A stretch of 64,000 bases of DNA from Klebsormidium nitens (GCA_000708835.1 DF237015.1:1-64000); one strand, 5' to 3'; shown: positions 7,180 to 59,048, counted from the stretch's first letter. The notes: generated by a model not told the origin, from the letters alone. Translations and numbers: made by a program.

Positions 7180-10100
7180 ATGGGGCATCTGATGGCTGCT
7201 CACGAGTTGGCCCTCAAGCTAGAAAAGCTGGGGCTGTGGGAGAAGTATCTGGGTGAGGAGAAGCGAAGAGTGATGCTGAAATACTTGAGCAATCGGACTT
7301 CTTGGGAGCAGTTTTTGAGTGGCACTGGTGTAGGCGCTTCTTTGACTGAAGAGCATAGGCGAGCGGAGTTTGAGCTAGGTATGCAAGTCAGGTGCCTGCT
7401 CTATGGAGAGATGGCGGTCGCGCTCTACTCCGCAGATTGTGCAGGTAAGCTTTCAGCCAGTGTGTCCTGCAGACAAAAAGCGGCTTCATCCTAGCTTTGA
7501 CATAAGCCTGCATTAGAGAAGAAATAGACTCTTGCATGTTAGTGCAATAGAGCTGACCGGACTTTGTAATGCTTCAGGATCTTCCTGACTTCAATGCATT
7601 CCAGCATTGGGACTTAATGCTGGTGCAATAGAGCTGAATTTCTTCCTACCATATTCAACTTTTGATGCATTTTAACTTTGGGACTGGAGTAACGCACTAG
7701 TTCCTTGGGCTGCGTTCTACTTTGCAGCCCCTGACTGGTGGTGCGGAAGGCTCAGCAAATTTTGACTCTCTTGAAGTGGATTAGAGATTTTACCCCCTCA
7801 GTTTAAGCTGCTGTGCCCTGCTTGGTGCCAAGTGAACCTCGCCACTTCTTTGACAGGCAGCAGCCTGCGACCAGACAGCGTGTACCACACCCTCGATCAT
7901 TCAGTGGACGATTGGCAGCGCCTGAGCGATGAAGGCTCCATTGAGCTGGCCAGTTTACGACATAAGGTGAGTCTCAATCTGGTCACATTGACCCCCTTAA
8001 TATCCGGAGTTTCCTGGCTCCTCGTCAAGCTTTGAATTGGCCGCCTCGCTTGAGCAACCAGGCCAGATTGACTCAGGCGCCGCAGAGTTTGAACTTCAAA
8101 ACGAAAGGGACGGCCTGCATCAAGGTTTTCAGTTTGAATCTGGAGCCTCGTCTTTTGTGAAAGGAGGAAAGGTTTGATTGATAGCCGCTTACAACTGTCG
8201 CACAGGCTTTTGCGAGAAAATTGTGAAGGGGACCCGGTGTTTTGTAGACCCTGTGTCACAATTACATACAGCAGTCTCAATCGACCATTGACCCCAAGGC
8301 ATGTGTGATCGCACAGTGCACTGTGCTGGGCTCTTGGAGGTTACTTGGAAAAGTCGTCCAGAAAAGTAGCCTCACTGCATAACTCTGCGGATCAACAAGG
8401 CCAGTGCCCCTTTGTGCAGTTCGGTCTGGATCTCGACGAGGCCCAACCATCAAGCAGGTGAGCGCCCTCCTCTTCATATGTTCGTTTTGAAAGCTCATCT
8501 TGCTTCTAAACGCCCCAGGCCGTGTTTCTCTGTGCAGTGTCACGCAGACTCTCCTCTTCCTTCATTCGAAATTCTTTTGATATGACATGTGTTAATTCCT
8601 TCTGGATGGAAGGAGGTTACTGTGTAGTGGCTGACTCCCAGACCCTGACTGCAGGCCCGGGGCTGACGGGGACGATGGATGCGGAGAGCGGCAGAAGCCC
8701 CGGTTGAAGGCCAGCCGAGAGATCATGAGCCTCATGCCAGACGTCAAGCCAGTGAGCTGTTTCTTCTGTTTTTCATAAGGTGAACTGGGGTGACAGGTGC
8801 TGCAGGTCGTCAGCATCCCCGGTTCAACGACCTGGCATTTTCAGGTCTCGTAATCAGAAAATGATGTGGCAAGGACGTGAAGTAGTTAGTTTGCAGACAT
8901 TTCAGGCATTCGCTCCTAACGTGACTCTGCCGCATCATATATTTCACTTCTGTGTGGTTTCCAAGGTCAACCTGTAAAAATGACAGCTTCAGCATCAGCA
9001 CTGCATTTGCAACACTTCTCCGCCAGGACTAATCATGATCTTGCCTGCAGGGCAAAAAGGACCTTTTGGAGGACAGGCAGAACGAGCTCAACGACGCACT
9101 CGAGCACGTTCTGACGGAGCTCAAGAACATGGGGGTGCGTCGCACACTCTTGGCCATTCGTCTCCTCTTTGTCGCAATATATCCATTGGGTCACTGGCCG
9201 TGCTGCATACAAGGAGAGTCATCAGGTCTCTAGTCGACAATGCTCTTTCCTGCACACCAGTCCTTCAATTTGACCATGGTCATTTCCTGTCGAGAATTGA
9301 CGCCATTGGCGCCTGGACCAAGATACGACCGTATCAGAACATTTTTGAGGCGCCTTCTTTGCATTGCGATTGATCACTCTCTCACACAAAATTGGGACGT
9401 CGAATGCAGGAGGCATCTAAGCCATTCCAGTGTAGAGTTAAGAAGTCGGAGGCGTGGGACTACTACACAGGTGATTTTCAAAGACACCAGTCCTTCCCAT
9501 TAGTTCCCAGTTCGCTTTGACAGTAGCTGCCGTCCGTTATGTGGACTTTGTCCTGGAGTCTCTGCACTCTGCTTCCTCTTGTCCGATCCTGGCCGAGATC
9601 TGAGCATGCTACGATTGTCGTTGTGCAGTCATCCAGAGGCCCATGGACCTAGGGACGATGACGAAGAAACTTCGGGCGTACAAGTAAGGGCACCTTCCAC
9701 TCACCCTTCAGACCCTTTACGTTCGGGCCCCCCCATGGAGATCTGTCTCGTCTTTAAGATTCGTGTATCGTCCTCCGGCACTGCACAGCTTTCTTTGTTG
9801 CAGGACAGATTTTGAAGAATTAACCTCGCGGGGTCTTTTGCCTTGTTCAATACCCGGACTCTCCTGCAGGTACCCCTCAAAGGTCAGCTTCCGGGAGGAC
9901 ATCGATCTGATCGCGTCGAACTGTCACGAATACAACGAGAAGGTACGTTTCGCCTAGTCTCAAAGAAGGTAAAGAATCTCAGAAGGAGGTAAAGAATCTC
10001 ATCAATAGTTGGCCGCGTTGGCTGTTCGATTCTCTGGACGTCCGTTAGCTGATGCCACCATTCTCATCCGCCCCTAAAAGCAATTCGGCCTCGGCGCTCT

Positions 10101-13100
10101 CTCTTTTCAACCAATCACACTCTTCCTAAAGACCGCTCAACTCTTGGAAGGTCGAACTATTTTGTGCTTCATTCAGGACTCGCTGTACGTGCAATACGTG
10201 GACGAGTTGCAAGCCAAAGCGTACGCCCTCCTCGTAGACGTCCCCGACATCGACGTCCTGGCCCTCAAGTCCGCCTCCGGGCCCGAGGCCGGAACCGGAA
10301 AGCCGCACCCCTCGCCAGTACGCGCGAGCGCGCCCTCCGAGCCGTCGAGCCCGGACAGCAACTCGGAAGACGAGGCGATCGCGAAGTCGCGGCCAGGGTT
10401 TGGGGGTTTCGGGCGGCACCAGCCGGGGAAGAAGATGCGCGGGAAGGCGGGGTCGATCGGGAAACGGCTGCTGAAGGACATGGGCGGCGGGAATGCGCCT
10501 GGGGAGGGGGAGGCGGAGGCTGCGGGGCCGGTTCACACCGACGGGAAGAGTTTGGCACCGCCCGGCGGACCGGCGGACCCGGGCCCTGTGGCAGCGGAGG
10601 ATGGTCGTGCTGGAGGTCTGCCCGACAGTCTGGCGGGAGGCGCAACAGGGCCCGAAGCGAATGACGACCCCGGGATGCATGTTCGTCACTCGCCGACAGG
10701 TTCTGAGTTGCTTGAAAAGTCCTCAGCGCAAGGGGCGACGATCAGACTGGGGAACGAAGAGGTGGGGATCAGGGATGTTCCCGTCAAAGACGCGTTTTCC
10801 AGAGACGTAAGCGCGTCTCCTAGAGTGTCCCCAACCTCGTTATCCCAACCAGGAACCCAACTAGATGGCGACAAAAGAGACAACGGGCAAGGAGCGGGCG
10901 AGAGCACCGCTGGACGGGAGGATGACGTGGCCGAGGCGCGGTGGCCCTACGGGGAGTGGCTACAGGCGACTCTGATGCAGCGAATGGAGCACCTCGCCGC
11001 GCGGGCGGCGGCTCGGCACGTTCCGTTTCCGGAGCAGCCGGTGCTCCAGCGGACGCCGGAGGGCATGGCGCGATACCTTGAGGAAGCCGCCCGGCGAGGG
11101 TCCGTGGTTTCCCACGCAACGCGGGCTGGGTCTGCGGAGCAGATGGAACCCCCGGGACCCGCGGAGGGCGCGGGGGTAACAGGACTGAGCGACGAACCTT
11201 TCATGCCGGAGCTCGAGTTTGCGACGGATTGCGTCCCGGACGTGGCAGCCGTTCCGGGACCGTCCGTCGAAGCGGCCCCGTCCGAAGCCGCCCGCGAACG
11301 AGAACCGGTACCCGAGCGGCCCGCGAAGCGGCCGAAGCCGGACACCGTTTCCGCGCCCAGCTGGACGGACGAGCGCGCGCGCGCGGCGCTGCGGCAGGCG
11401 GCCGCGCGGCTCGCGGCGCGGGAGGGGTTCGACGGGATCCGGCGCGGCGCGCTGGAGGTGCTGACGGACCTGCTCGGGGCGCACGTCCGGCGGCTCGGGC
11501 GGACGCTCCGGCTGCTGGAGGAGCGGTACGAGGGGCGCAGCCCGGAGGCGCTGCTCGCGATGTGCCTCAACGGGTTTGGGGTCAGGTGGGGGCACTGCAA
11601 CGCAGTCAACACCCTTCTTGTAGAAGTCAGTTTCTTCGACGGTTTGCTTCGTCTGCATTGATAGCGTTCCTGTCATACTTACTAACGTACTCGCTTCCGT
11701 GGCTCGGGCATAAGTTGGGAGGCATACGGTTTAGGTAGGGCCCGTGACGCACCCAACTCCTTTGACGGACCTTTTACCTTTTACTGTAGGGCCCACTGTT
11801 ATTGAGTTAATCCGGCCCTGCCCCATATCACCTGAGCTCCTCCAGCCTTCTTATCCATAATTCTACGCAAACAAGATACATTCACCTGGCAACCGTAAGC
11901 ACGCTTCAAGTTGGCGAAGCTAACAGTCTCCCGTTGTTCAGGAACATCGCGGAGCTGGCAGCGTACACCAAACCCAAAGAACCGTCCGCAGCGCCCGGCC
12001 CAGGCCCGAGTGCCGGCGCAACTAAAGAAGCGCCTCCCAAGCCAGTCAGCGTGCAGCCTGTCAAGGCCTCCAAGCCGGAACCGAAAGCGCCCGCGCCCAT
12101 CCTGCCCGTGCGACCCCCATCTTCCACACCGTGAGTGTGCGAAACTTCTAAAGTGTCGCAAATTCGACGTTCTTCAGTTCCAAAAGTTCCTGAACTTCAA
12201 GGTCAAAGCTACTACATCAGAGAATCGAAGGTTTCAAGGACGTTGGGCCGACACGAAAGCTGGTGCACGTGACTGTCGGCAAATGTGTTGCGCGCCCTAC
12301 GTTTGTTGGCTCACCGAAATGCTTAAGTCTGAACCCGTAGCAAGCTGTTGAAATGCCAAGTTGGAGAACCTGTGCTTTAACAACGGTCTGAACCGCGGGG
12401 TGTGCTAGCTTCATCACCATCTCTCCACGTCACCATCGATTCGTGCCCTCGTATCCCGTGCGCAAGCAGGCAGTGTTTGTACGCCCGTCCCAGCTCCGTT
12501 TCTGATCTGTCCCTCTTGGAAGTTGCATTCTGATATCTCCGCTGATTCTGTTCCTTTCCAGGCAATTCCCGAGTGTGCCAGTTTTCAAGGGCAACCTCCC
12601 GAAAGTGGAGACCGACCCGGAAATGTCGTCCAGCCCCTCGCTAGAGCCCGAGAAGAAGAAGGTGAGCGAGCGCTGTGGTGAAGATCTTGTCGCGAGTCTA
12701 GTTTGTCCGCCGACCTTGTTGCTAACCGGTACAGCCTCGGCCGGACTAACCAACGTTACCTTGGAGTCTGCTCCGCTCTTCAAGGACGTAACCGCCGCAT
12801 GCTTCGCTGTTTGAACCCTAGCTTGTTTCTTTTATAGTACGGGTTGGTCTCGGAAACTTGTCAAAACAAGTGGTTCGTAGGAGATGGTTCCTTCTGCTTC
12901 GTGTCTGTTTCCGGAATTTTGGGTTTCATAGACGGTTCGCAATGTGGGTCGAAAGTTGGCATTCTGCGTGCTTAGGGGGTGACAAGTGTCTCTATTCCTC
13001 CAGGCAAAACCCCGCGCCAAAAAGGCAGCACCCACCACGTCTGCTGCTCAATCCCGTTTCCCCGGGCTCAAGTCTCCGACAGTCTCCCCGCCTGCCCCGA

Positions 13101-13366: not shown

Positions 13367-15074
13367 TGACATAAGAGTATGTCTTCGTTGACTCTAAATG
13401 ATACATGGGTCAGAAAGGTCGACATTGTTCAACAAGCTCGATTTTTGACCTACCGTGGTTGCTCTTCGGATTATTTGGATCGGCCGATTCGCCTGAGTTT
13501 GCATAATTGTCTCAAGTTGATCATGGCAGCTTCAAGTTGCCACAGCTTGCCACAAGATCCGCATTGTTGTGAAGTGCCAACCCTTGTTGCACCGTTTTGA
13601 ATCATGTACTATTACATTGAAGTTGAGCCACTTGAGCTCTTCACAATTCGTAGTTCTTAAAGATTGAATGGGGCCTGAAGCGTTAGCATGACTTTCAAAA
13701 CCTAAGCAAACCGCGGCGGCCTGCCAAGAGGCACTGTATGCAAGAAGATTGCTTACTCTGTTAACACGATTTGTAACTTAACCGGACGGTCGCCCTTCGA
13801 ACAGGCTAGCTAGGGATCGGTGGAAGCAATGTACATGCCTGGTTCTGAGAGCAGTCAGATGCTTGTAGGAAACCGGGTCAGTAAGAAGCTAGAAGACTAA
13901 GGTACGTTGCTTTTAACGTACAATCGTAACATGAGCAGTAAGGGGGATTCCGTAATTCGGTTGATTATATGGTTACGCGCCGTGCCGCCGCCCTAGTAGC
14001 TAGCCCGTCCGGCATCCAACCCAATGTCCTGCGTGCATCTTATAGTACGTCGCCGCCGGGCGCCAGACTCTGATTGGTGTGGCCGCGGAATCCGGCCCCA
14101 AGAACAAATTGGTTTGAACACACGTTTTCCTTTCACGTATAGTCAATTCTTATGCAATCGACGGGTTTCTGTCACTTATATGGAGCGTCTTAGTAATCAG
14201 GTACAATTTAAATGATACGCGGTATCCATAGGTATCGACGGCCCAGGGCTAATTTGGTCGCGCGGCATGTTCAACATTTTAGATCGTGACATGCGGTATG
14301 TCGATGATTTACTATCATTACCATCTTGTGCGTGTACGTCCTCGAAAATCACTTGATATTGCAGACCGAGAAGGTCGACCTGACCTCCAGTCAAGCCGGC
14401 TTTAAGGGCCCAACAAACGAATAAAGACGAAAGGTCCGCAAATAAGTTGCCAAAGAACGAGTCACGAGATCTGTTCAACATCCTCCATACCTCTGCCGAA
14501 ACTATTGTAATCGGCTATTGCAGAGGGAAGGCTTGATTACACGTTGGTGATGACATAAAGACGTAAGACACGCGTCAACCAACTCAATCCCTAACGTCAC
14601 ATGGTCAAATTCTGGACTTATATTGACTAGTGTTGAATAAATAATGTTTGACGACGGAGACTTCCTTTTGAGGGGCTTCTACTCGAGGACGTAGAATGTT
14701 GCAGCGCTTTCAAGCACTTTTACTACCAAGATACATCTGCCCTAGCATACAAATAGTAAAGCAGAACAAGTGTGTGCGTCAATATGGCCTTACTCAAACA
14801 AACAGGATGCTCAGTACAAACGTTGATCAACGTTTTCGACCGCCGACCTACAAAGGTCCGTACGGACCAATCTGTTTATGACTTTCAGATCTGTGGCCTC
14901 CGCACAGCAACCTCGAACCACACACCACCACCTACCTTTAGGTGAAAGTTACACAACTTGCGTTGACAAGAAATGGCGGACTAATGATGGGTTGTTGCCG
15001 CACCCAATGCCCCAAACCGACCCGATCATGGGAACGCCTTTCAAGCAACACTGTCGGGTTGCCAACATAATCGA

Positions 15075-18000
15075 CTACCGCCTTGATTGCTCAACCCTTG
15101 GCACCTCCAATGCCTCCGACTCCTGTCTTGTTGACGACCCATCCATTGACACCGATTCAGCCCGGACACCCTCACTAATCGTCACCACCGTAGCCTCTTC
15201 GTTTCTGCCTCTAGACAACCCCTCGCTGTCACCCACGTTCCTTTCCAAATCGCTCGAAATTCTAACGCCCTCGGCCGGACGAGCGGTTGCCAGGTGTCCC
15301 ACAGCCTCGGCCTCAACCCTCGCCAGCTCAGCACGATAGTTGTCCAGCGCCTCAAGCAACACGCGCCGGGAAGCGTCCACGCCGTCTAGGGGTTCCGTCC
15401 CATCCCCGGTTGCCTCCCCCGGGTGCTCTTGAGCCGTTTCTAGAACGCTGGGGTTGGGCGCAGTCTGGTGCATGCGGCAGATGGGGCACGTGCCGTGCTT
15501 GTGGAGCCACGTGTCAATGCATGTTGAGTGGAAGGAGTGGCTGCAGCCGGGTAGCTCCCGTAAGAGATCGCCCTCCTCGTACTCACACAGACAGACGGCG
15601 CACTCTCTGCACGGAACCGGAGTCGGACCTTCAGTTTCTCAAGACTGTACGACAATGAATCTACAGTAGTCTTGAAGCATCTGCCAGTATTTGGGGGCAA
15701 ACATTTCGGACATAGAGGACCTGAATCGGAGGCCGCTGTTTCGGCAGGTGGAAATTAAAGAAACGAGGCTCCAAAGCGGAATCCGCCGAACGGAGCATGG
15801 AATCACTGGAGGGTCAGGAGGAAGTTTCGAATCCGTCCTAAACCAGCTGCACAAGTGACCATCTTACAAGAAATGACTTGAAGAATCTGTAGCTTTGGAG
15901 GGGAACTGGAAAAACACATGCAAGCAGGACAGGAAAGATCCAAGTACTAAAAGACCAGGACCGGAAAATACTGACAGGGTGAAGCATACATACTAGAAGC
16001 GGGCAACTTCGGGCAGGGCAGAATCGGACACAAGTTTCCCGGAGTGACAGGATTCAGAAGCTCACCTGTCAGCAGAAGAACTAGAGGCTTTGCGGAACTC
16101 CTTAGTCGGGAACGAGGTAACTAGGCCCGGTGGGAGCCCGCTTTCCTGCCGCCAGGTGTTGCCGCTCTGCAGAGAAATGAATGCCGTAAGCAGATTGACG
16201 ACATCCGTTGCTTGTGGTCAACCCTCTCTCGTTTGAAAAGTACTGGAGACAAGGATTCATAGTGGGTCTAATCAAGCAGGACGGACATGCTTTAAAAACT
16301 TGGATACCAATACTGACGATGCTGCTGAAGCGTTCACAAACATCTGATATACTGCTTGCAATGTGATCGCTGTGCGACGTAAATATCGAAGACTGAAAGT
16401 GAATTTGGAGACGATGATGACATCAACCAAACCATGCCCACTCCAGATGGACAAAAGCTTTTTGGTCCATGTCAGACGTTTCGCCTGACCCCATCTTCTC
16501 AACATTTTTGAGCAAGCCTAAGGAAGAAGCCTAACAAACGACAGTGTGGATCTGGATCTGCCAATTGAAGCATGACCATACTTCTCCCCCAAACTCCTGA
16601 AAAAGAGGCCATAGCACACTGAGGAAGGATCAGGACAGAAGATCAAGAACCGTCTTTATCCAGACCCTATGGCCAACCGCCCGCTTTACACTCCTTATAT
16701 CTAGCAGCCCTCAAATCCCAGGAACGTTAAATAATGTTGTATCGACTGCATGGGATGCTCAATTGAGAACTCCAACCAATTCCTCAACTTACACGACGCC
16801 CCCTGTAGGGGTGGTCGAGAGAGAGCCACAGAAGTGCTGAACGCTAATTGGAGCATTTCAAACCATTGACGAAACCCTGTCCAAGAACTTACAAAACCCA
16901 TCAGCTTAACCAAGTAATTTAGGAGAACAAATGCGTCGCTAATACGTCTTGCTCCTCTCCTGAGAGCGGATATTGCCCCACCCTTCCTCACAAAGCAACT
17001 TAAACATGCCCCTCCCCCCAATACCTGCCGCGTGCGCACCCTCCCCTCCTGGGTGGTGACGGCGCCGGCGAGCATCCGCCGCCAATTGAGCAGTTTGCAG
17101 CAGACGAGCGAGAAGACGCACACCAAGGAAATGACAGATATGCACAGCGCAAAGGCGACGGTCGGGCTGCCCCCGAAGCTCGGACCTGTTAGAGGGGGGG
17201 TAAACAGTGAGAGGGGGAAGGGGGGTCAGAGGCCCACCTGAGGACCAAACCTCAGCAAGACGACTTGGGGGGATTGGGAAGCAGCGCCGGGAGCAGGGCG
17301 CCGGCGGGGGCGTCTGCAGCAGATAAACATGACGGTGGTGGCCACCGCAATTACGACCACGCCGATGGCCAGGCTGATGAGGTGCTGAATAACCGGGAAG
17401 CCACCTACGGGGGGCAGGCGGCCGGTGAGAACGTCTAGACCTTCCAGCAACGAGCGCTAGGCTTGTCTTGACTAGTCTTCTTCTGGGAGAACCTCTCAAC
17501 GATTCAAATGCATACATTCTGAGAACAAGTGCCTTAACATTGTAGAAGCTTGCCAAGGCTTCAAAGGTTTCCTTGAGAATCTTTACAGGCTCTTTTAAAC
17601 CCTCCAGCCTTGGAGTAATACTTGCCATCCCACATCTATGACAGGTTGCTCTGGTGTTCACGACAATTTGTGGTTGTTAAATTTCGCGTATCATGATGCA
17701 GCACACTCTAGATTATGGTACAGGACCAAGCGAAAGAATTCGGGGTGGACTGGTACCTGCTAAGCTCATCATCTTGCAAGAAAGTTCTGCCACCGTCCTC
17801 GACCAAAGTGACTTGTGAGGTCTAAGCACAGATTGCAATAACCCTAGGCTTTGGCAGTCTTGCTTTCTCCGAGCAAGCAGTTGAAAGCTGCCAAGCGCCA
17901 ACTCCAGCAGTGATTCATATGACAAACTGGACCCTCAGCAAAAAGCTTCTTTCATTCAGTATGACAGCATGACTGTGGAAACCTAGCTGTATAGAACGAT

Positions 18001-19127
18001 ATCAGCAAACAGGCATGCTTACACAATGTTCAACGTTTACACTTTTTGCAACGCATTAGGCTCGTCGCGACCGTAGTATGCAGCTGATCAGAATACTCTT
18101 GTCCTGACACAAGATCTAAAAGCAAGGGCTGAGCGGTGAGCCGCAGTGTCAAGCAGACACTCAACAAAGGAAGGGCTTACGTCTGATGTTAGCTGAATTA
18201 GACCGTATGGGTGTAGCAGAAGCAGGTACGTCGACCGAGCTTTGCAGCAGCTTTCGGACGCCATGTGATGTAACGTCTAAGATGTCCAAGCTTCCAGCCA
18301 ATACGGGCTGGACGACGTGGCTCAGTCCTGTTTCAGTGGGAATGAAGGATGTAAGAAATAGGAGCGTCCATCGCCTTTGATAGTTCTGGCTATCTTGAGA
18401 GTGTGCTAGCGACCGGCCTTCCTGCAATGCAGAACAGGTCTCTCTGTAGTTGAGCACAAGGGTAGAGTGCGATCAAAACTATGGGAGGTATAGAATTTCA
18501 CGGGCTGGACAACCTGTCACAGATTTGACCACCAGCCATCGAAATGCATGACGTCATCTTTGGTCGGCAAGTAAGACCTGGCTGTAAAAAACCAGGCAGG
18601 TCAAAATAGACTCGCATGATGAGAATGAGAAAAGAAACAACAGTTGCTTTGCTGCCGCAAAGTGTTGCTTTGCTGCTGCAGATGGATCCAAATGCAGACA
18701 ATATGCCTCTGCAATGGCTGTGGCTATTGGTTTATTCACAACTCTGGAGAAAGTTTGCCGTAGAATCATGGAGATTGCTGTACTCGGAGAAAAAGCCACT
18801 GCGGAGCAGCAAGAAGGAGCCATTGACAGGCAAGGATGAGCCAGGGAAAGGCAAACCGAGACTTCCACTGTCACAAAGAACCCGAACAACTGGGAGATGC
18901 CTACTGAAACTTGTTGTAGCATAAACAGAAGATGTCAAGTTTTCCGCGTGGAAACCCTGCCCAATATCCACCCTGCAGACAAATGGACCTCCCAGAGAAG
19001 GTCAAGACAAAAATCCTCCATACCATGTCGGACCACAATGCAGAGAAACTTCAGAATCTGAGAGCTCACCTAAGAGCAGAACAACCAAAGCCACCATCCC
19101 TCCAGGAAAAAAGCTTGTCCTCATCAT
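15075..19127 (-). CDS. ATL-family RING-H2 E3 ubiquitin ligase with signal peptide and two alternative TM exons
   Basis: Exons: 19070-19127 (MMRTSFFPGGMVALVVLLL), 18181-18327 (GLSHVVQPVLA...GVRKLLQSS...NIR), either 17238-17404 or 17025-17185 (TM + CC + basic), 16066-16166 (GLD-like motif GLPPGLVTSFPTKEF), 15075-15606. RING-H2: CAVCLCEYEEGDLLRELPGCSHSFHSTCIDTWLHKHGTCPIC. All phases are consistent. Confidence 0.88.
17025..17185 (-). other. Alternative TM exon B of the ATL gene (phase 1 to phase 0, 161 nt)
   Basis: ctctaacag|GT CCG AGC...CGG CAG|gtattg. Encodes PSFGGSPTVAFALCISVISLVCVFSLVCCKLLNWRR...TRQ. Confidence 0.75.
17238..17404 (-). other. Alternative TM exon A of the ATL gene (phase 1 to phase 0, 167 nt)
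   Basis: ccccgtag|GT GGC TTC...CCT CAG|gtgggc. Encodes GFPVIQHLISLAIGVVVIAVATTVMFICCRRPRRR...GPQ. Confidence 0.7.
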
Positions 19128-20002
19128 GCTGCAGCTTCCCCTGTCTCCCCTGACCATGAAAACTGAAAACGTGTGTCTTTAATATTTATAGAGGAAAGAG
19201 CTGACTCAAGGGCCCAGCCTGATATAGTGATACCGTATGCGCGCGTTGAAGCACATCTAGGGCTGATTTGCTGTTTATCATTGCGTTTAGCTCCTTCTCT
19301 GCACACTCTGCAAATCGGCTGCGGATATGGCGTCCAGAAAAAGCAGGATTCACGAAGCTCAATGACAACTACAATTTAGTACAAAGCGCTTTGGCAGACC
19401 TTTAAGTTTGACCAGCTCTGCTCCTCAGTTGTCCTTCCTGTGCCCGTAGTGACTAGTCGCACGGACAACTCGCACCGAAAATCTTTCTGACGGACTTGGT
19501 GCCATGAATTCATTGTAGGAATTCATGGCCCAGGCCCCAAACCGTATTACTTATTGACATGTATATCGTGATTTTAGTAATAGGGCATGTAAAAGTTAGT
19601 TTTAACCCGGGCTGCCAAATTGAAAAGTTTGGAATAATCTTCGTGGAAAGACGGGTGCGAATTGCCCGTGCCACTATGGTCCAGACAAAGCAGACGCTCC
19701 CCCGACCACGTGTTGAATTTACCGGGGCCGGATGCTTCCTCAGGCCCCGGTGTCCGGGAACTTTTGGCTTGCAGAAAACTTCCCTGGAGGATTTTCCCGA
19801 GCTCCTGGCTCCGACCAGGGATCCTTCACATGCGCGGGATCCCTGGCGGGCCCGTTTTCTACCGACATGGTGACACATCTTCACTCCTGCAGTGGCTACA
19901 CTTGTCTCCTGCAAGGGATCTGCTGTAGCCTCTTGCATTTCTAGGTAGCTGCTCAAGCCTCATTCCACCTTCTCTGCCGCCAGTCACATAGGTCCTGAAG
20001 AA

Positions 20003-23000
20003 ATGGCGACGCCCTTCTCAAAGAGTCGGAGGAAGAAGCCCTTCTTCGCTGGCTCTCACCTTGTGTTGAGCATCCTTGGTGTTGTGCTGGTTGTTACGGT
20101 TTTGCAGCTGCAGACAGTGGCCGCAGACAACACTTTGCAGGATCAATGGTACTCCTTAACCCCTTCACACAGAGCAGGCCACGCCCGCCGTGAGTGCTTT
20201 TCATGGAAGCAAAACAATGTGCGACTTGTTGATTTCAGGGGCGCTGTCTCTCTGACTTGAGTCTGGACAGTCCCCAGAGTATTCTGTACATGCATGCACA
20301 GCAGATGGTTATCAAAGCAGCCGCTACTGTACAGAGCTCCTTTGTCTAAGAGTTTTGATTACTATCTTGAAACTGTAAGTAACTTGATAGTGAATGGTCA
20401 CATACTCACATGATCGTTGAGCAGGATTGGGGCGACTAACTTAGGAAAACCTATTTCTGCTCCAAATCTGCTCATCTTCCTTCTTGATCACACTCAGGCA
20501 ATCGCGATGGCCTCGACAGTACCCGTTTGCAAGCGCCATTCAGTGATCAGGGGTCACCTAAGTTTCAAGATCGTCAGTTTTCCTGCCAGTCTTTGAACTG
20601 CGTCTGCTTCCGAGTTTTTGATGACAGGGTTTTGAGTTTGGGCTTGGTTCAGCCAACGTTACGCGATTGATGAGTTGCTCTTGCAGACAATGGCAGTATT
20701 CCAATATCTCACTGGTTCTAAGCTGATAGTGTTGACAGACTGTTGCAGGGTATTCCCCCTTCTCCTCTTCCCTGGATCGATCCTTTCTTTGTTTGCAGGC
20801 AACGCAGATTTGTTTTGTAGACAATACTGTAATTTGTGTTCCTTGAAGCACCATGCTCCGCTGCCTTTTCGTGGGCTACACACTTTTCTGCAGTGTAAGT
20901 TCTGCTGCACATTATCACCTCTCTCTGTTTACGTTCCCAGACATTCTTCAGACCGTCATTGACCTCAGCACCGCATCATCCGACGGCCCCAAGCGGCCCC
21001 TCGCTGTTTCGTCCCGCACAGACCCCCTCGACTCTTTCCACCAGTACCGCGGCGGGTTTGACCCCACAAACAAGCACTACTGGGGCGTGAGTCTCTCCCC
21101 CTGGAGTCTGCATTTTCTTCAGGATAGGGGCACTGGCCCTTATCTCCTTGATGGCTAGGTCACAAGCAGGGAGTACCCTTATTTGAAGTCTGGTGGAAAA
21201 CTTTAGGTTGGTTTGACGAGCAGATACTGGAAAAAGCTGGCATCTCTTGCAATTCCGGTGTGTTGTGTCACAATAAGGAGGGGCGCTTGGCCGCTCAGGG
21301 CTTAAGGGGTTCGAGCACAAAATGTCAGAGATGGCCTAGTGTATGGTTTCAACAATCGCCTCAAACAGAAAAGAGGCCATTTGGCGGGAAATCTTCAATG
21401 AGGTGATTGGCCACTTTCATGTAGCGGAAGATACATTTACTGACGGTTGACCAGGGTTGAGAGCATGGTGGCAGCGTCACTATCTGGAGGAGTGCCAGCT
21501 TCACATCAAACATAGTCGCTGTCTCTCGAGACATTGGTGCCAATAGATTTCGGCTGACAAGATGCCACTATTCCTTCCTGGTGGCGGCGGAACTGGACCG
21601 CAACAGAAGGAGGGTGAACAAGTGCGAAGAACCATGTACGAGTCTCCTCGGAACTCCTTGGAGGTCATGAAAAAGCAGCCGAGTCTCTGCCAAGCTGCAC
21701 CGGCCTGGTGTTGTACAGAGAAATGATGTAGTGCCTTCATTGGTTGCAGTATCTTCCTCTCTCTCAGTTCTATTTTGTACGAAATATACTGTACCCCCTG
21801 CAGCGAGGACGGTGGCTCTGCCCTACAGGTCGAGGTTCCATTAGGAAGCCATACCAACAAGAGGGTTTGAAAGCACGCTAGAAATGTTCTGGGGTATCCC
21901 CTAGGCCACCCCCTTTCCGTAGTCGTATACTCCCTTACACCCCGCCATTCCGCAGGCCTTTTCGAGTAAAGCGCTTCTGGTTCTGTGTTCAACAAGCTGT
22001 CGCTGGGTTTCTCTCTTGCAGCCTGTAGTATGGCTCGGCATCTGAGCTTACGTCATTGGCGTGTTTTTAAGGAGAGAAGCTAAACGTTGTATTATGCTCA
22101 AGTCGCTCATATAGCAAAGCCTGACACCGTGACTCCGTCGATCGCAGTATATTAACAAACAGCCTGGAGACCCTTCCCAAACCATCATTAGATTCCTCCT
22201 TTTGGCTTGCTGGTTCCATCATCAACTGGTCTGCCCTCATTTCCTTTTGCAGTCTGTGATATGGCTCGGCATCTGGGGTTACGTCATCGGTGTGTTCTGG
22301 CTCCTGGTCGGCGTGCTGTGGGCGCTCGCCACGTGCTGCTACTTCTGCTGCTGCCGGAGCAAGACCGCAAAGACGAGCGGCTACTCGCGGGGCTACTACT
22401 GCTGCCCTGCGGTTGTGGTCATCCTCCTCTCTGCAATTGCGCTGTGAGATTTTCCACCTTTTCTGTGAACAAGGATTCTCTGTTCTTGCCTTCCTGCTAA
22501 CAAGGGGTCCGACGCTACAGTGGTCTCGTTTCGGCCGAGCAGTAGGGTTGTTGTACTTAAGCGTTGGGCAGTCCAGATGTTACTTGTTTGCGGGATTTGT
22601 GATCGCTTCTGCTCTGTTGGCAATAAGGCGTTTGTTTCAGGCAGTGCCCTAGGATCGTGACAGACTGGGAGGTTCTGGACCGTGAAAGGGACTAGAAGAG
22701 GGGACAGCGGGATGCACATCAGATACGTTTCGTGAGCACTTGCGGGTGACGTCTGATCCATGAGTGGCTGCGGCAAGAACCATCATGGTCATGATTCTGT
22801 TTTGGTCTTGTCAGAATGCTTTTCGTTGCGGTCAAATCGCAGTCGTAGCTGCTTGATTTCTGCTCAACATTCAACGACACACGTCGGCTCTGAAGCTGCC
22901 TTCTTGCTTTACGGAATCGAAGACTCGTTAATGAACGAGAGACCTTACAGGGGTCACGCTCATCACAAATGGTGGGTCTGCCGTTAACACAGACCCTTTT

Positions 23001-52709: not shown

Positions 52710-55700
52710 ATGGAGCCTAAAGTCTGGGACGGGGAGAGGAAGGCAGGCCTCATCAAGGCGAAATTTGATGAGCTGTAAGGGCCTAATGCAGTGTCTCACT
52801 ACGCTTGTTCACAAATGGAAAAAAGCAGCGCACCTGCTGGCAATGCTTCCTGAATCAATTGAGGCTTACTTGGCGCACTTTGATTTTTGCAACTTTAGCA
52901 TCTTGTTGAAACTCGGTACATGGTGACAAAAGCAGGCTCCTTTTGAGGTCCAAAAATCACATCAACTATAAAAGTTCTGGAAGCTCCAAGCCAATTCCTT
53001 GCGGCCAATTGACGATAGCTCTCTTTATGTTGTTCCCAGTTGTTGCGATGCTGGCTTTGAAAAGTTCAACGTGGCGTTTGGTTTTCTGGAAGCTGCAAAA
53101 CCACGAGGAAAATTTGCAGACTTTGTATGGAGAAATTCTCTAGATTGCTCCGTCGGATATTCCAAGACTGGACTCGATGAAGTTACCTGTTCTTTACCTC
53201 TACCCACATTTTCTCGTCATGTGCACGCAGGTATTTGAAGCACTTCCAGAACCAGTCCGGTGTCCTCTCCTTCCCGCCCCAAGCTAGCCCTATCCATCTT
53301 CACCATACTTCCCCCCCTGCTGCGCCCAAAAACCAACCAGCAAAGCCTTCCCCAAACCCCCAAACCTTTGCCCCGCCAGTCAACCCGGATTTCCCAGAGG
53401 GAACTTCTCAGGCACGTTCAGAGGGCTTTTCCCAGCCTGCACTTGCGCCGGTGACCTTCACCGGGGGGCGTGGAGCTGGTTCCAGGGGTTGGCCGCTAGA
53501 GAAAGACCAGGGGAAAGCGCTGCGGTGCCCCCCACGAAACAATTCTGATGAGGACCTGCGGAGTCTCGACAATGCGGGGAGAAGCAGGCCGTCTGAACAG
53601 AGGGCCTTGTCTGGTCTTTCGGGCGGGGGGCAAGAGAAGGGCTGTGTGAGGGGTTTGACAAAGGATGTCGATGGTACTTGGCAGACGGACTGCAAGGAAG
53701 AGGGGCCTTCCGAAGAGAAAGTTGACACGAGGTGGGGCGGGAAAGCATGTTTGGATTGGCTTGGTTCGCAAAGTCAAGAGGATTTGCCTCAGCCCGACTC
53801 TGAACAGCCGGTCAGGGTCGTCAGTGCACTTCCGGAGGGTGCTCTTCCCAGGCTAAGTTGGGCGCAACTCCCGGACGGGGCCACCGTAATCGTGGTCAGC
53901 CCTAACCTAGTCACTAGCTTTGAGGGGTGTCCGGCGAAGCAGAATGTAGTGAGCCCTAACCTGGTTGCTAGCCCGAATCTCGACTCTGGGGACTGGAACG
54001 GGAGTCAGGCTCTGCTGCCAGTCTCACCAGAACGGCTCACAATAGGCGATGGGGGCAGGCGCCACATGGCAGATGGGCGGAGTTCGGAGGGGGCGCACTC
54101 TGGCTTATCTGGGGAACTAGGTACAGGGCCGAAAAGGGAGTTCGAAGCAGGGGAGGTGATCCAAGGGGGCTCAAAACGGCTGCGGAAGGGCAGGGGGGAG
54201 GCACCAATTTGCGGTGCAGAAACTGGGTGCGCTGATGAGGGGCCTGCTGCTGCCAAGTCGGAGGGAGATCTGTATGCAGGGACTCAGAAACAAGATTGGA
54301 AGAAAGCGCAAGGAACGAAAGGCGGCCTTAATGGGAAGCATGCAGGGGGTGAGAACAAAGCCAAGGGCCGGGGCGGGCAAACGGCCGGGGATCGCAAGCC
54401 GCAGGAGATGCGACTTCAAGAGTCTCGGAAGAAGCAAGGGGTAGGTCGGGAGAAATGTAAATGCAAGGGTGGGGTCGAGACCAAAGCGAAGAATTCCCGG
54501 ACTGCGAGGGAGCTGATGAGGCTTGCGGATATGGAGTCCAAACCAGGGACAAAAGGGGAAGGAATTTTCGGGGTCAAGAGGCGGCGGGTTTGCAGTCTGG
54601 CCGCGCTGACTCAAAGCAGCGGCGATGCCGCTGTTGTTGATGTGGGGGCCCATCCTTCCAAGAAGCTCAAACTTCTTTCCGGCGGTAGCTCACTCCGAAG
54701 CCTCGGTGTCACGCCGCCGCTGCTTCCGATGCAAAAGGCGCTCCGTGCTGGCAAAGCCCCAGCCGCAGTGCAGCGTCCCGGTTCCAACTCACTTGCAGCC
54801 AAATGCGGGCTCCCTCGTCCGCAGCAGCAGGATATCCATCACAAGCAGTGCGAACCATCAGCTGAACCTACTGCACGATTGGTGGTCAAATCGGGTGCCG
54901 CCCCTAGCAACCCGAAGAGTTTCGCAGGAAACGGGGTCTGCGAACCTAGTGTGTCGAACCTCATGCGGCAGCACGAGGCGGGTCTAGCCGGGAAGCGGCG
55001 AAGCGAAGCGTTGGAAGCGCTGGCGGCAGCCGCCCGAGAGCCCATGTGCAGCATCTGCTACACGGAGTACGATGCGCGGCGGTGCTACCTGGCCTGCGAC
55101 GTCTGTGACCGGTGAGCGTTTTCCCGTCCTTAATTATGGCCGGGGGCACCGTCTTCTTGTCAATCTGTATAAAGACCGCTCCTCTCATTCCGGGTGGCCG
55201 TTTTCCGCCCTCGAAGGCTCGGCTCCATTATGGACTTGGTGACGAACGGACGACGTTCGGAGGGTGCAGAAAGTCTGTTGCTGTATTTGCCCCTCTTTTG
55301 GAGCGGATGTGCTGACCAAGTACTGCGCTTGTTTTCGACAGTCCCAGCTTCAGTACCTGCTCCGGTTTGTTCGCACCGGTTTGCGTCCAAGGTGTATCTT
55401 GTCTGACATACATGTACGATCCAAGTTCGTGGGAAGCTTTGATGTTTGCAAAACGCCCTGCGAAGGCATTTTAAGTCGTCTCTTGCGGTCAGACGGTGGT
55501 CAGAAGATTGTGTACCTCATTCCTTTCTTATTGTGATTATTGGAAGCAAAAACCTTCTGCACTCAGTTCTGAATGTTGCTTCAGGTAAGGTCTGGTTTTC
55601 CAAGCATCGTTCTTTAGTTGCGCGTGAATCCAGGCTCCAATTCTACTGCCAAGTTCCCCCGGCCGTCTGCGTTCTTAGCACAGAGAAGGCTGACTTGGTT

Positions 55701-57275
55701 AGGTGCCACTGTCAAGAGCATTGGACTTTTTGGTGTCCTTCTTCAGGTCCAAGCTCACAGGATCTTGCTTGTCTCTTCGTAAGGAACCAACTCAAGAACT
55801 TCCAGTAAACACAGGACAGTAATCATCTGCGAAGTTGGTAGTCTCATTGAGCCCCTCTCTTCTACAGATGGTACCACGCGGAGTCGTTCGGGGTCTCTCC
55901 AGAAGCCGCCGTGGCCCTCATGAAGTTCAAGTGTCCGACGTGCATGCGGCGGGGCCGACCGTCCGGCTGTCCGATACCGGATCCATCCGCCGCGCTCGCG
56001 GCACCGCTCAAAATCCGCCCCAAACTTCACCAAAAGGCGCGCATAGCATATGCCGCGAGCAGAGGTGTGGTTCCGGGGGCCCAGAGAGCAGGCTTGGGGG
56101 AAGTCTCCGAGGAGGCGCAGGTCGAGAAGCGGGACCAGCGTTTGGTGTCCAAGGACATCGTCAAAAGCGATGGGACTGGCACGCGAAACCGGTTCATAGC
56201 GTCGGCAGTAGTGACGGAGAGCGGACAGAGTACAAAGCAGTGTAAGATTGGGGCGCCCAGCGACAGTGGAAGGGGCGCAAAAGCGAAGATTCTGGAGAGT
56301 TGCGAAACGGCGGTAGAGGTTATCGGGGCTCCCCCTGCAAAGAAGCGCCCGCCGCTGCGTCTGGTCGGGGGGACTCACCCAGCAAATCTTAGAAATGGAG
56401 TTCTAACGAGCAATCGGGAGCTGGCTCCCGGGGGACTCGCGGGATGTCCGCTGGAGGAGAGGTCGAGCGGGCGGCCTTTGACAACGGCGACCAGAGCTGA
56501 AAACAGCGCCTCCGAGGCGCAAGGGGCCAGCGAGTGCGCTGCGCTGTTAGCGCAGCCGTTGACTGACTCAGCGTGTTTGCCGCACTCTGCGCAAGCGACG
56601 GCGGTCGGGAGAGCCAGAGGCAGTCCACCGTCGAAGAAGAAAGCTTCCGCTTCTGAAGTGATCAATAGGGTTCCGGTGGCCGGAACGCCGAACGGCGCCG
56701 AAGCGCTGGGAAGCTCTTGCAGCGCGGAGCAGGAGACGGGCCGGTATAGAGGGGAGTCGACGGCCGGCGGAAAAGCACGGATACGGGAGGGAGGGGAAAC
56801 GGAAAACGGAACGCGGAAACGGATCCAGCCTACGAAGCTTGGGCCCGTTTCTCAGCCTTCGGCGATCGGTGTACCCAAGGCGACTGAGGCGCGGCGTTCA
56901 GAAGCACCGGTGCTTTCAGAAGGCCCTGCTGTGCCTCGATCGGCTGAGCGCAGCCGAGACATACCTCCTGCCCAATCCGCACCTCCCCATGTACAGGGCC
57001 CCCAAGGAAACCTTCGAGAGAGTCATGCTGCTACTGGGTTTCCCGGAGGCCCTGTTTTGCCGAGCGTGGGTCGGTACAGCTGGGAAGCTCAATACTACCG
57101 GGCTGCAGACGAGGCCTCCCGAGGGGGGCCGGTTCTGCCGGACCGTATTCACACTGGGGCGCCTCGGGGGCAGAGCGCTCGGTGGTCGATTGACTTGAGC
57201 AAGGTCCAGGAGGTGGACGGGAGGAAGGTGAGAATGGGGACGGAGGAGGTTGACGGAGTGCAGCAGCTGAGCTGA
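52710..57275 (+). CDS. Large, mostly low-complexity nuclear protein with one atypical PHD finger
   Basis: Exons: 52710-52774, 53231-55111, 55868-57227/57275; a possible last exon is 57953-57976. PHD: CSICYTEYDARRCYLACDVCDR|WYHAESFGVSPEAAVALMKFKCPTC. The 3' end is uncertain. Confidence 0.72.
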
Positions 57276-59048
57276 GGCGAGGGTGTTCACACCTAGGGGG
57301 GAAGAAGCGGAATTCGGGGGTAATGGTGTGAACAGGGATGTTTGGACTGGCGGAGGATTGAGCTGCGGGGATGAAACGGGGTATTCACATTGGTGAGGAA
57401 GAGGCAGAATCGGAAAGTGCTGGGGGATCGGCGGTTGCGGGACGAGGTCGAGCGGACGGGGTGTTCCAGACTGGGCGGCGGGAAAAGGTCGGAGATAAGG
57501 TGAGGATGTGATCTCTGGTGTTCGATCGAAGCGGATGTGCAAAGATATTGCGCAGGGTGCATGGTCTGTCGAACCTTACTTTGGCACGCTTGCCTTGACA
57601 TGCCAGTGGCATATGCGTGTCATATCGAGCGGTACTCTTCGTTCGACTCTGCTCCGCATCGCCTTTGACGACAGCACAGCACAGAAAATTCGTTGGTCCA
57701 TAAATCTTCAACTATAGACTGGTTCGTACTTCTTTAAAGTGTCATGTTAGTGCGCCCCGTTGCAAAACAGTCCCATCATCTGCGGAACTCGAAGGACAGC
57801 CGATGACTCCGCTGCTGATTCGTGTCCCCTTCATTTTTTACACTTGTTTGGTTGTATATGCTTACAGACGATCAGTGCTGATCCGTGACACAGGCTTCAC
57901 TTAATTCCGTGCGGTCAACGGGGCAGCTCACCCGTGAAACCCGCATTTGCAGGTGGCCCGTCGAGGATACAACTGAAGGCCAGTATGCAGAAGAAAGTGC
58001 AGCAAACTGAGTTGGCCGTCACATACTTTCTATTGTGAAAAGCTGGTCGTATTGCAACGTCGATCAGCTGTTGCTATGACGATAAAGTGGTGGCCGCCTT
58101 GCAATGTTCTCTTTGTGTCGTTCGTCCCATGATGGCCACGTTGGTGCATATCTTGCAAAAACAGTACGGGATGTTTCCGCAACGGTACGGTGCCTCTTCT
58201 TTCAACCTAGATATGCAAGCATACGCCATCTCGTGGTAAGATGTGCGATGCCAGCGGTTCTTTTCGATCGACAGCGCATGCACCGTTGCGAGAAACGTTC
58301 CACGTGAATGTTATCAACAACATGTCTTTCACCCCAGCAGCTCGAAGTACTATTGACTATATGCAGTTATAGTCGCTTGGTGAGTCCGTCCGTATATGGT
58401 ACGCGTAGCTGTACTAGATCAACTCATCATTATATGAACTACCTAGGCTAAGTAGCTACATGATCCATATATGCAGCCGGCCCCTAGTTCTGCGCATACT
58501 AAAAGTATAGTTTGTATCACGAATCGAGTCAACTTGTCACAGTGCTAGCTATCCAATCCCAAGAGTGCGGCGCGTGTGGACCGGAGTACGTATACCCGAG
58601 TGCATGTGAGCCAAACCGACCGGGGCCTGCAATTGTTCACAGTAGAATGGCAGTGACCATTCAATTGTCCCGGCCTGCAGTCCAGATTTCATGATTGCCA
58701 ACCTCAGAGATAAAGTAAGCGCATGAGTAGCTCCTAATTGAATATTCACAGAGTGCAATGCGGCCGCGTTGCTGGTCATTGCTTGTTAAATTTGGATAAT
58801 CTGCTCCAGCGGCAGGACGCTCAAAAGTTTATCGACTCGGCCGATATACGCGATGCACAAAAGGTATCATCTAGAGCTGGCTATAAACGATTCTTCAGTA
58901 TCTTATCAGCAGGCTGTCCTTCGGACCAATGAACATTTCCTAATTCAAAAGTCCATGAGCCATTCCTGACTCGGTTCTAATGAACCTTAACTTTAGTTTA
59001 TGTCAATCCCTTGTGTCTATGATGAGCGTGCTCGCTTTGAATCAAGGT

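Follow-up and report, generated by a model that had tools for sequence, protein, structure and literature searches.

Organization of the locus and its protein product

The window analyzed here is a stretch of 64,000 nucleotides of Klebsormidium nitens DNA (GCA_000708835.1, DF237015.1:1-64000), and all positions are counted from its first letter. On its minus strand lies what is very probably a single-copy ATL-type RING-H2 gene in which either of two exons, 3A or 3B (A and B below), occupies the third exon position, giving two ligases with different membrane anchors. RNA contigs delimited five exon positions, with GT..AG ends at every intron (Table 1), and extended the 5' UTR to at least position 19456; the 3' UTR extends to at least position 14700. 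Apart from the spacer between A and B, the introns of the gene measure 742 nt, 776 nt (ahead of A), 858 nt (after B) and 459 nt. Within the window we found neither a third alternative exon nor a second RING-H2 gene, and no K. nitens paralogue with the same layout was found among the protein matches.

Table 1. Exon positions of the K. nitens RING-H2 gene and the spacer between its two alternative exons. X8 is one of the four RNA runs and L001 to L003 are the related genomic contigs, all described in the text.
Feature	Position	Strand	Length and content	Evidence
Exon 1, coding part	19070..19127	(-)	ATG at 19127	joint 19070->18327 (GT..AG) in 4/4 runs; translation
Exon 2	18181..18327	(-)	147 nt	RNA-contig joints; conserved by tblastn in L001, L002 and L003
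Exon 3A	17238..17404	(-)	167 nt; annotated isoform	joints 18181->17404 and 17238->16166 in four runs
Spacer between 3A and 3B	17186..17237	(-)	52 nt; C-rich; GT..AG ends; in-frame TGA	
Exon 3B	17025..17185	(-)	161 nt; unannotated	joints 18181->17185 and 17025->16166 in four runs
Exon 4	16066..16166	(-)	101 nt; GLD-type motif GLPPGLVTSFPTKEF	RNA-contig joints and translations
Exon 5, coding part	15075..15606	(-)	stop codon 15077-15075; zf-RING_2	joint 16066->15606 in run X8

Exon 1 encodes MMRTSFFPGGMVALVVLLL(G), a hydrophobic N-terminus resembling a signal peptide, and the signal-peptide-like N-terminus of the protein reads MMRTSFFPGGMVALVVLLLGLS. This exon is required as the source of the start codon, which exon 2 lacks in the reading frame that is used. 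A start at the ATG at 18264, inside exon 2, was considered and rejected, as its frame meets a stop in exon A and the joint to exon 1 favors the ATG at 19127. Exon 1 had been absent from the gene model of an earlier note on this DNA. Exon 2 contributes a short ectodomain with the conserved pattern RKLLQSS..VP.SA.P and ends in phase 1, with AGA C/GTAAG at 18181 (the slash marks the splice site).

From the N-terminus onward, the protein consists of the signal-peptide-like segment, the ectodomain, the alternative transmembrane (TM) module, the exon 4 motif GLPPGLVTSFPTKEF and the RING-H2 domain. The two modelled isoforms, of 334 aa (A) and 332 aa (B), have the ectodomain, the GLD-type motif, the RING and the tail in common and differ over 53-55 residues. 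The model of isoform A matches, residue for residue, the K. nitens protein listed at NCBI as 'Zinc finger RING-type domain containing protein' (P0154), and exon B therefore falls inside an annotated intron. Both isoforms are predicted to be type-I-like membrane proteins with a cytosolic RING, and are putative E3 ligases, an activity predicted from the domain content.

Membership of the ATL family

ATL proteins are defined by a canonical RING-H2 ligand spacing, the sequences R-x-LP and [IV]D-x-WL, an N-terminal TM helix and a GLD motif of 12-16 residues (PMC3161093). The RING-H2 of exon 5 was recognized as Pfam zf-RING_2 (E 3.2e-14) and reads CAVC-LCEYEEGDLLRELPG-C-S-H-SF-H-ST-C-IDTWLHKHGT-C-PI-C. 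Its ligand spacing, C-X2-C-X15-C-X1-H-X2-H-X2-C-X10-C-X2-C, is canonical, and it holds R-x-LP before ligand 3, ID-x-WL after ligand 6 and Pro after ligand 7. In both isoforms hydropathy places a TM helix on the N-terminal side of the RING. Between the TM helix and the RING lies the motif encoded by exon 4. The earlier note had spoken of a GLD exon, and the motif is indeed found there, but it reads GLP, with Pro for the Asp of GLD; it still falls within the ATL definition, and the GLP-type motif is kept in all three related sequences. Judged by its sequence, the protein is thus an ATL RING-H2 ligase as defined above (PMC3161093), and the family assignment made by the note stands.

Two exons that encode alternative membrane anchors

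Exons A and B are each preceded by AG and start with GT, end in CAG/GT, start in phase 1 and end in phase 0. The earlier note had described this pair of adjacent exons, of 167 and 161 nt, with these shared splice sites and phases and one hydrophobic helix each, and had pointed out that the 52 nt between them is far below the length of the other introns; each of these points was borne out on the minus strand, with the four introns given above for comparison. Read in phase 1, the peptide of either exon opens with ~8 polar residues and continues into a hydrophobic helix of ~22 residues, after which come Cys-Cys, one basic residue and ~25 more residues. Kyte-Doolittle hydropathy gave peaks of 2.7-2.8 for both helices, at residues ~77-99 of each isoform. 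In both exon peptides residues 28-29 are Cys-Cys, and the next residue is R in A and K in B, again as the note had it. Beyond the signal-peptide-like N-terminus, the protein has no TM helix other than the one from 3A or 3B.

Outside these shared properties the peptides are distinct. Exon A encodes the TM helix LISLAIGVVVIAVATTVMFI, CC, a polybasic and Pro-rich RRPRRRP and a conserved VVLLRFGPQ; the polybasic RRPRR and the pattern (V/L)LLR(F/I)xP are kept in relatives. Exon B encodes PSFGGSPT, the TM helix VAFALCISVISLVCVFSLV, CC, K..RR (CCK at the junction) and a conserved EGRVRTRQ; FxGSPTV on the outer face, the two additional cysteines of the TM helix and EGRVR are kept in relatives. Each exon is predicted to supply extracellular juxtamembrane residues, a TM helix, a CC pair at the cytosolic face of the membrane and about 25 cytosolic juxtamembrane residues. 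The exchange thus affects a membrane anchor, and neither a catalytic nor a binding element.

Splicing of exons A and B in RNA

We determined exon use in Logan contigs, not raw reads, from four public runs belonging to four studies (X1, X5, X8 and X9). That these runs are RNA was a guess, and the spliced joints argue for cDNA. The contigs used match the window at 99% identity or higher. They contain six GT..AG joints, among which are the four either-or joints that the earlier note had put forward as the check on its reading: 18181->17404 and 17238->16166 for A, and 18181->17185 and 17025->16166 for B, each of which was present in 4/4 runs. A 215-nt contig runs from the last 30 nt of exon 2 through the whole of B into the first 26 nt of exon 4, and a 194-nt contig runs from A into the first 27 nt of exon 4. 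The joint from A to B (17238->17185) was absent in 4/4 runs, which at the level of contigs excludes abundant co-inclusion only, and the joint from exon 2 directly to exon 4 (18181->16166) was likewise absent in 4/4 runs of contigs, which lose rare variants. Mutually exclusive use of exons A and B, as claimed in the note, is supported by these joints. Unspliced contigs were present too, at lower depth. No short Logan peptides matching exon B were found.

Word depths, of which there is one figure per contig, were 92-137 for the A joints and 33-43 for the B joints in X1, X5 and X9, and 16-22 and 24, respectively, in X8. By depth, A thus exceeds B about threefold in X1, X5 and X9 and roughly equals it in X8. 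The share of B in the summed A and B joint depth ranges from ~20 to 60% across runs, and B is therefore a substantial, apparently variable part of the transcripts.

The reading frame is also consistent with a choice of one exon. Either A alone or B alone joins exon 2, from 18181, to exon 4 and the RING exon in frame, yielding the two full-length models, as the note had stated. When both are included, the model reaches a TAG in exon 4 and stops after 192 aa, so that the frameshift foreseen by the note was confirmed by translation; when both are skipped, the frame shifts and the model stops after 89 aa. In 4/4 taxa (see below), including both exons or skipping both leads to a premature stop. Retention of the spacer as coding sequence was considered as well and rejected: in K. 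nitens and L002 exon A plus spacer is a multiple of 3 and stays in frame but reaches a TGA, and in L001 and L003 retention is out of frame.

Conservation of both exons in related algae

Three related genomic contigs were compared with the window: L001 from an ENA metagenome assembly, L002 from a Logan assembly and L003 from a JGI metagenome. Their orthology rests on best similarity together with a collinear, shared exon structure. Flanking synteny was not found, the Methyltransf_16 neighbor of L002 and L003 being absent from the window. The order of the exons of the gene is identical in all three, with the same exon phases and an open reading through to the RING.

Exon A measures 167 nt in 4/4 taxa. 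Exon B measures 161 nt in K. nitens, 167 nt in L001, 161 nt in L002 and 164 nt in L003, always 2 mod 3, and its indels in the three relatives are in-frame only. The splice AG and GT dinucleotides of both exons are intact in all four. The spacer measures 52 nt in K. nitens, 47 in L001, 61 in L002 and 42 in L003, and as these lengths do not change in steps of three, the spacer is non-coding. Other introns measure ~490-1075 nt in the three relatives and 459-1075 nt across the four taxa.

The TM frame is open in 4/4 taxa, and the other frames gain stops in L001 and L003. Ratios of dN/dS were below 1 for all pairs (0.17-0.99), although with ~55 codons they are noisy and some pairs lie near 1. Across the four taxa 24 residues are invariant in B and 14 in A, and the synonymous divergence of exon B is lower than that of exon A. 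In K. subtile, a Trinity transcript (P0004, EukProt) codes for a full-length protein of type A. In a search for further orthologues among JGI metagenome contigs, a peptide-pattern scan gave 123 matches, 0 of them confirmed, and the exact exon-B DNA pattern gave 0 matches, which left four taxa for the comparison. Exons A and B are both maintained as coding sequence in related algae, and the coding conservation that the note had asked of both exons was thereby found.

Two other readings of the locus were weighed against this evidence. Exon B could be splicing noise, a non-functional cryptic exon in a gene whose working protein comes from A only. The annotation holds isoform A only, the one full-length transcript-derived relative that we found (from K. 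subtile) is of type A, and B is minor in 3/4 runs. Yet contigs with B occur in all four studies at the joint depths given above, isoform B is wholly in frame with the RING, and B is the better conserved of the two exons by invariant residues, with its splice sites kept and its indels in frame, all of which makes this reading very improbable. The two sets of junctions could also come from two gene copies or alleles, one carrying A and the other B, as contigs cannot tie distant junctions to one locus. Such an arrangement is scarcely credible given that A and B adjoin in one locus in four genomes (52 nt apart in K. nitens), that the contigs match the window so closely and that both exon-specific contigs have the same exon 2 and exon 4 flanks; moreover, our protein searches turned up no further K. 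nitens protein similar to exons 1-4.

How exclusivity might be enforced

Mutually exclusive exons (MXEs) are known to be enforced in four ways: by steric exclusion, by U2/U12 incompatibility, by NMD or through RNA structures that compete with each other (PMC6071210). A role for U12 splicing is not suggested here because all splice sites look U2-type GT..AG. Steric exclusion, joined by decay of frameshifted RNA, is the likely means of enforcement on the features of the sequence. A spacer of 42-61 nt would be too short for removal as an intron because any branch site of B would lie within ~45 nt of the 5' splice site of A, and the shortness of the spacer, conserved across taxa, fits steric exclusion. 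As a back-up, RNA that includes both exons or skips both would be frameshifted, carry a premature stop and be degraded by NMD; the precondition for this is present in the sequence, in that double inclusion or skipping leads to a premature stop.

Both modes have counterparts elsewhere. Like exons 2/3 of alpha-tropomyosin, for which steric exclusion is described, the algal pair consists of two exons and no more, parted by a very short intron (PMC6071210). Like exons IIIb/IIIc of FGFR2, where double inclusion leads to NMD, its exons have lengths that are not multiples of three (PMC6071210), NMD in the alga being predicted.

The choice between A and B could instead be made mainly by docking/selector base-pairing of RNA, of the Dscam or 14-3-3 type, rather than by the short spacer. 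In one such scheme the G-rich, near-invariant 5' part of B would pair with either of two rivals, the start of the spacer or the C-rich tract that precedes A. RNAalifold proposed a 6-bp helix between the polypyrimidine tract of A and CGGGGG in exon B and a second helix, of 7 bp, joining the start of the spacer to the 3' splice site of B, both with a few two-sided changes in L003, and the low synonymous divergence of exon B points the same way. Against this, the spacer region folds with the same energy as dinucleotide shuffles do in 4/4 taxa (z -0.46 to +0.14), C-runs and G-runs pair by composition alone, and the G-run of exon B is partly lost in L003; with only four sequences, two of them closely related, covariation cannot be established. 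Neither inverted repeats nor RNAalifold nor single-sequence folds revealed stability beyond that of shuffles. We consider control mainly by base-pairing improbable, and keep steric exclusion with decay of frameshifted RNA as the preferred explanation.

Origin of the exon pair

The divergence of A and B is far beyond that of 'twin' exons. BLASTP of A against B gave no match, and a pairwise DNA alignment has only ~45% identical columns. Alignment of the A family with the B family by hhalign gave a probability of 87% (E 3.9e-6), with columns 9-36 matched to columns 9-36, although TM segments inflate such scores. A local alignment of A with B scored above shuffles (p 0.001-0.008), where shuffling breaks the TM/basic layout; this is not proof of common origin because any two TM-plus-basic segments outscore shuffles. 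Both acceptors carry CTCAC, followed by 17-18 C-rich nt and then AG. Given that phase, length class and the position of CC are common to both exons and that their profiles align in register, an old tandem exon duplication would be the most economical, if not proven, origin of the pair.

Possible function and significance

Swapping the anchor would alter the membrane placement or traffic of the ligase, or its partners there; we suggest such an effect by likeness to exons 17.1/17.2 of Dscam1, alternative TM exons that direct targeting to dendrites or axons (PMC12081453). The changes in localization, palmitoylation or substrate choice that the note had proposed are likewise conjectural. More tentatively, and with more doubt than belief on our part, the switch could be a regulated and anciently conserved routing of one RING E3 ligase to two membranes or membrane domains. 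Isoform A might then be routed by its polybasic, dileucine-like tail, and isoform B by its cysteine-rich helix, which may be multiply S-acylated, together with its own ecto-juxtamembrane motif. If such routing is true, splicing in this alga would take the part that dozens of intronless ATL paralogues play in land plants.

Well-supported MXEs are rarely documented in the plant lineage, and in 2014 the authors of Kassiopeia noted no described internal MXE gene in Arabidopsis (PMC3923563). Our literature searches found nothing on MXEs in Klebsormidium, in streptophyte algae or in RING-H2/ATL genes, and nothing on an alternatively spliced TM module in an ATL. MXEs themselves are a known type of event. 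With two exons, a spacer of 42-61 nt and frameshift safeguards, the K. nitens pair opens the models of steric exclusion and NMD to direct testing in a relative of plants. Isoform B is a predicted, unannotated and RNA-supported addition to the K. nitens proteome. The layout of the gene also suggests that the choice of membrane anchor may be a functional variable for ATL ligases.

Comparison with known systems

The K. nitens protein has the order of TM helix, GLD-type motif and RING-H2 in common with plant ATLs (PMC3161093), from which it differs in its signal-peptide-like N-terminus and conserved short ectodomain, in having GLP for GLD and in the alternative splicing of its TM module. Four introns interrupt the gene, in contrast to the many land-plant ATL genes that lack introns (PMC5133618). 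The earlier note had set the locus against an intron-poor ATL background, and this holds for land plants, ~50% of grapevine ATL genes being intronless (PMC5133618). For the module itself the counterpart is found in an animal: Drosophila Dscam1 likewise has two mutually exclusive TM exons, 17.1 and 17.2, in a single-pass protein whose remainder is unchanged (PMC12081453). Dscam1 is, however, a cell-adhesion receptor of animals, whereas the K. nitens gene encodes a predicted E3 ligase of the plant lineage, in which a role of the anchors in targeting is putative.

Conservation of the exon 2 ectodomain

Exon 2 of the ATL-type RING-H2 ligase gene encodes a short ectodomain, in which the core RKLLQSS-xx-VP-x-SA-x-P is conserved in all four taxa (K. 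nitens and the three related algae represented by genomic contigs L001, L002 and L003). Residues flanking this core are variable among the four, and the indels found there are in-frame. The core may serve as a conserved motif for recognition or modification outside the cell. At the other end of the protein, the L002 ortholog has a stop codon within the acidic C-terminal tail (at about 10240–10250) where the K. nitens frame continues, and the length of this tail therefore differs among taxa.

Position of exon 2 in the ligase gene of each taxon
Taxon or contig	Coordinates	Strand
K. nitens (window)	18181–18327	minus
L001	4662–4814	
L002	6753–6899	
L003	6019–6135	

Transcription and sequence context of the ligase gene

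The contig carrying ligase exon 1 extends to 19456, and a TATAAATA lies near 19192. Upstream of the ligase gene is a transcribed neighbor (19605–20600), whose contigs share a common loose end at 20189; this likely reflects a splice to an exon outside the region compared with the contigs. GC-rich blocks were seen at 10001–12000 (0.64) and 54001–58000 (0.57–0.60), the remainder of the window averaging approximately 0.50–0.53.

The introns flanking the alternative transmembrane exons A and B were covered by unspliced contigs (17375–18208 and 16141–17054) in each of the four sequencing runs, at approximately 10–25% of exon depth. These contigs may represent pre-mRNA, retained introns or some library DNA. 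Among the protein matches there was no second ATL-like K. nitens gene with such a pair of transmembrane exons.

Synonymous divergence of the alternative exons

Over the same taxa, dS was lower for exon B, which belongs to the minor isoform (17025–17185; 0.25–0.42), than for exon A (17238–17404; 0.40–1.06), and the first ~45 nt of exon B were nearly invariant. The low dS of exon B together with its near-invariant start could indicate a splicing enhancer or another constraint acting at the RNA level.
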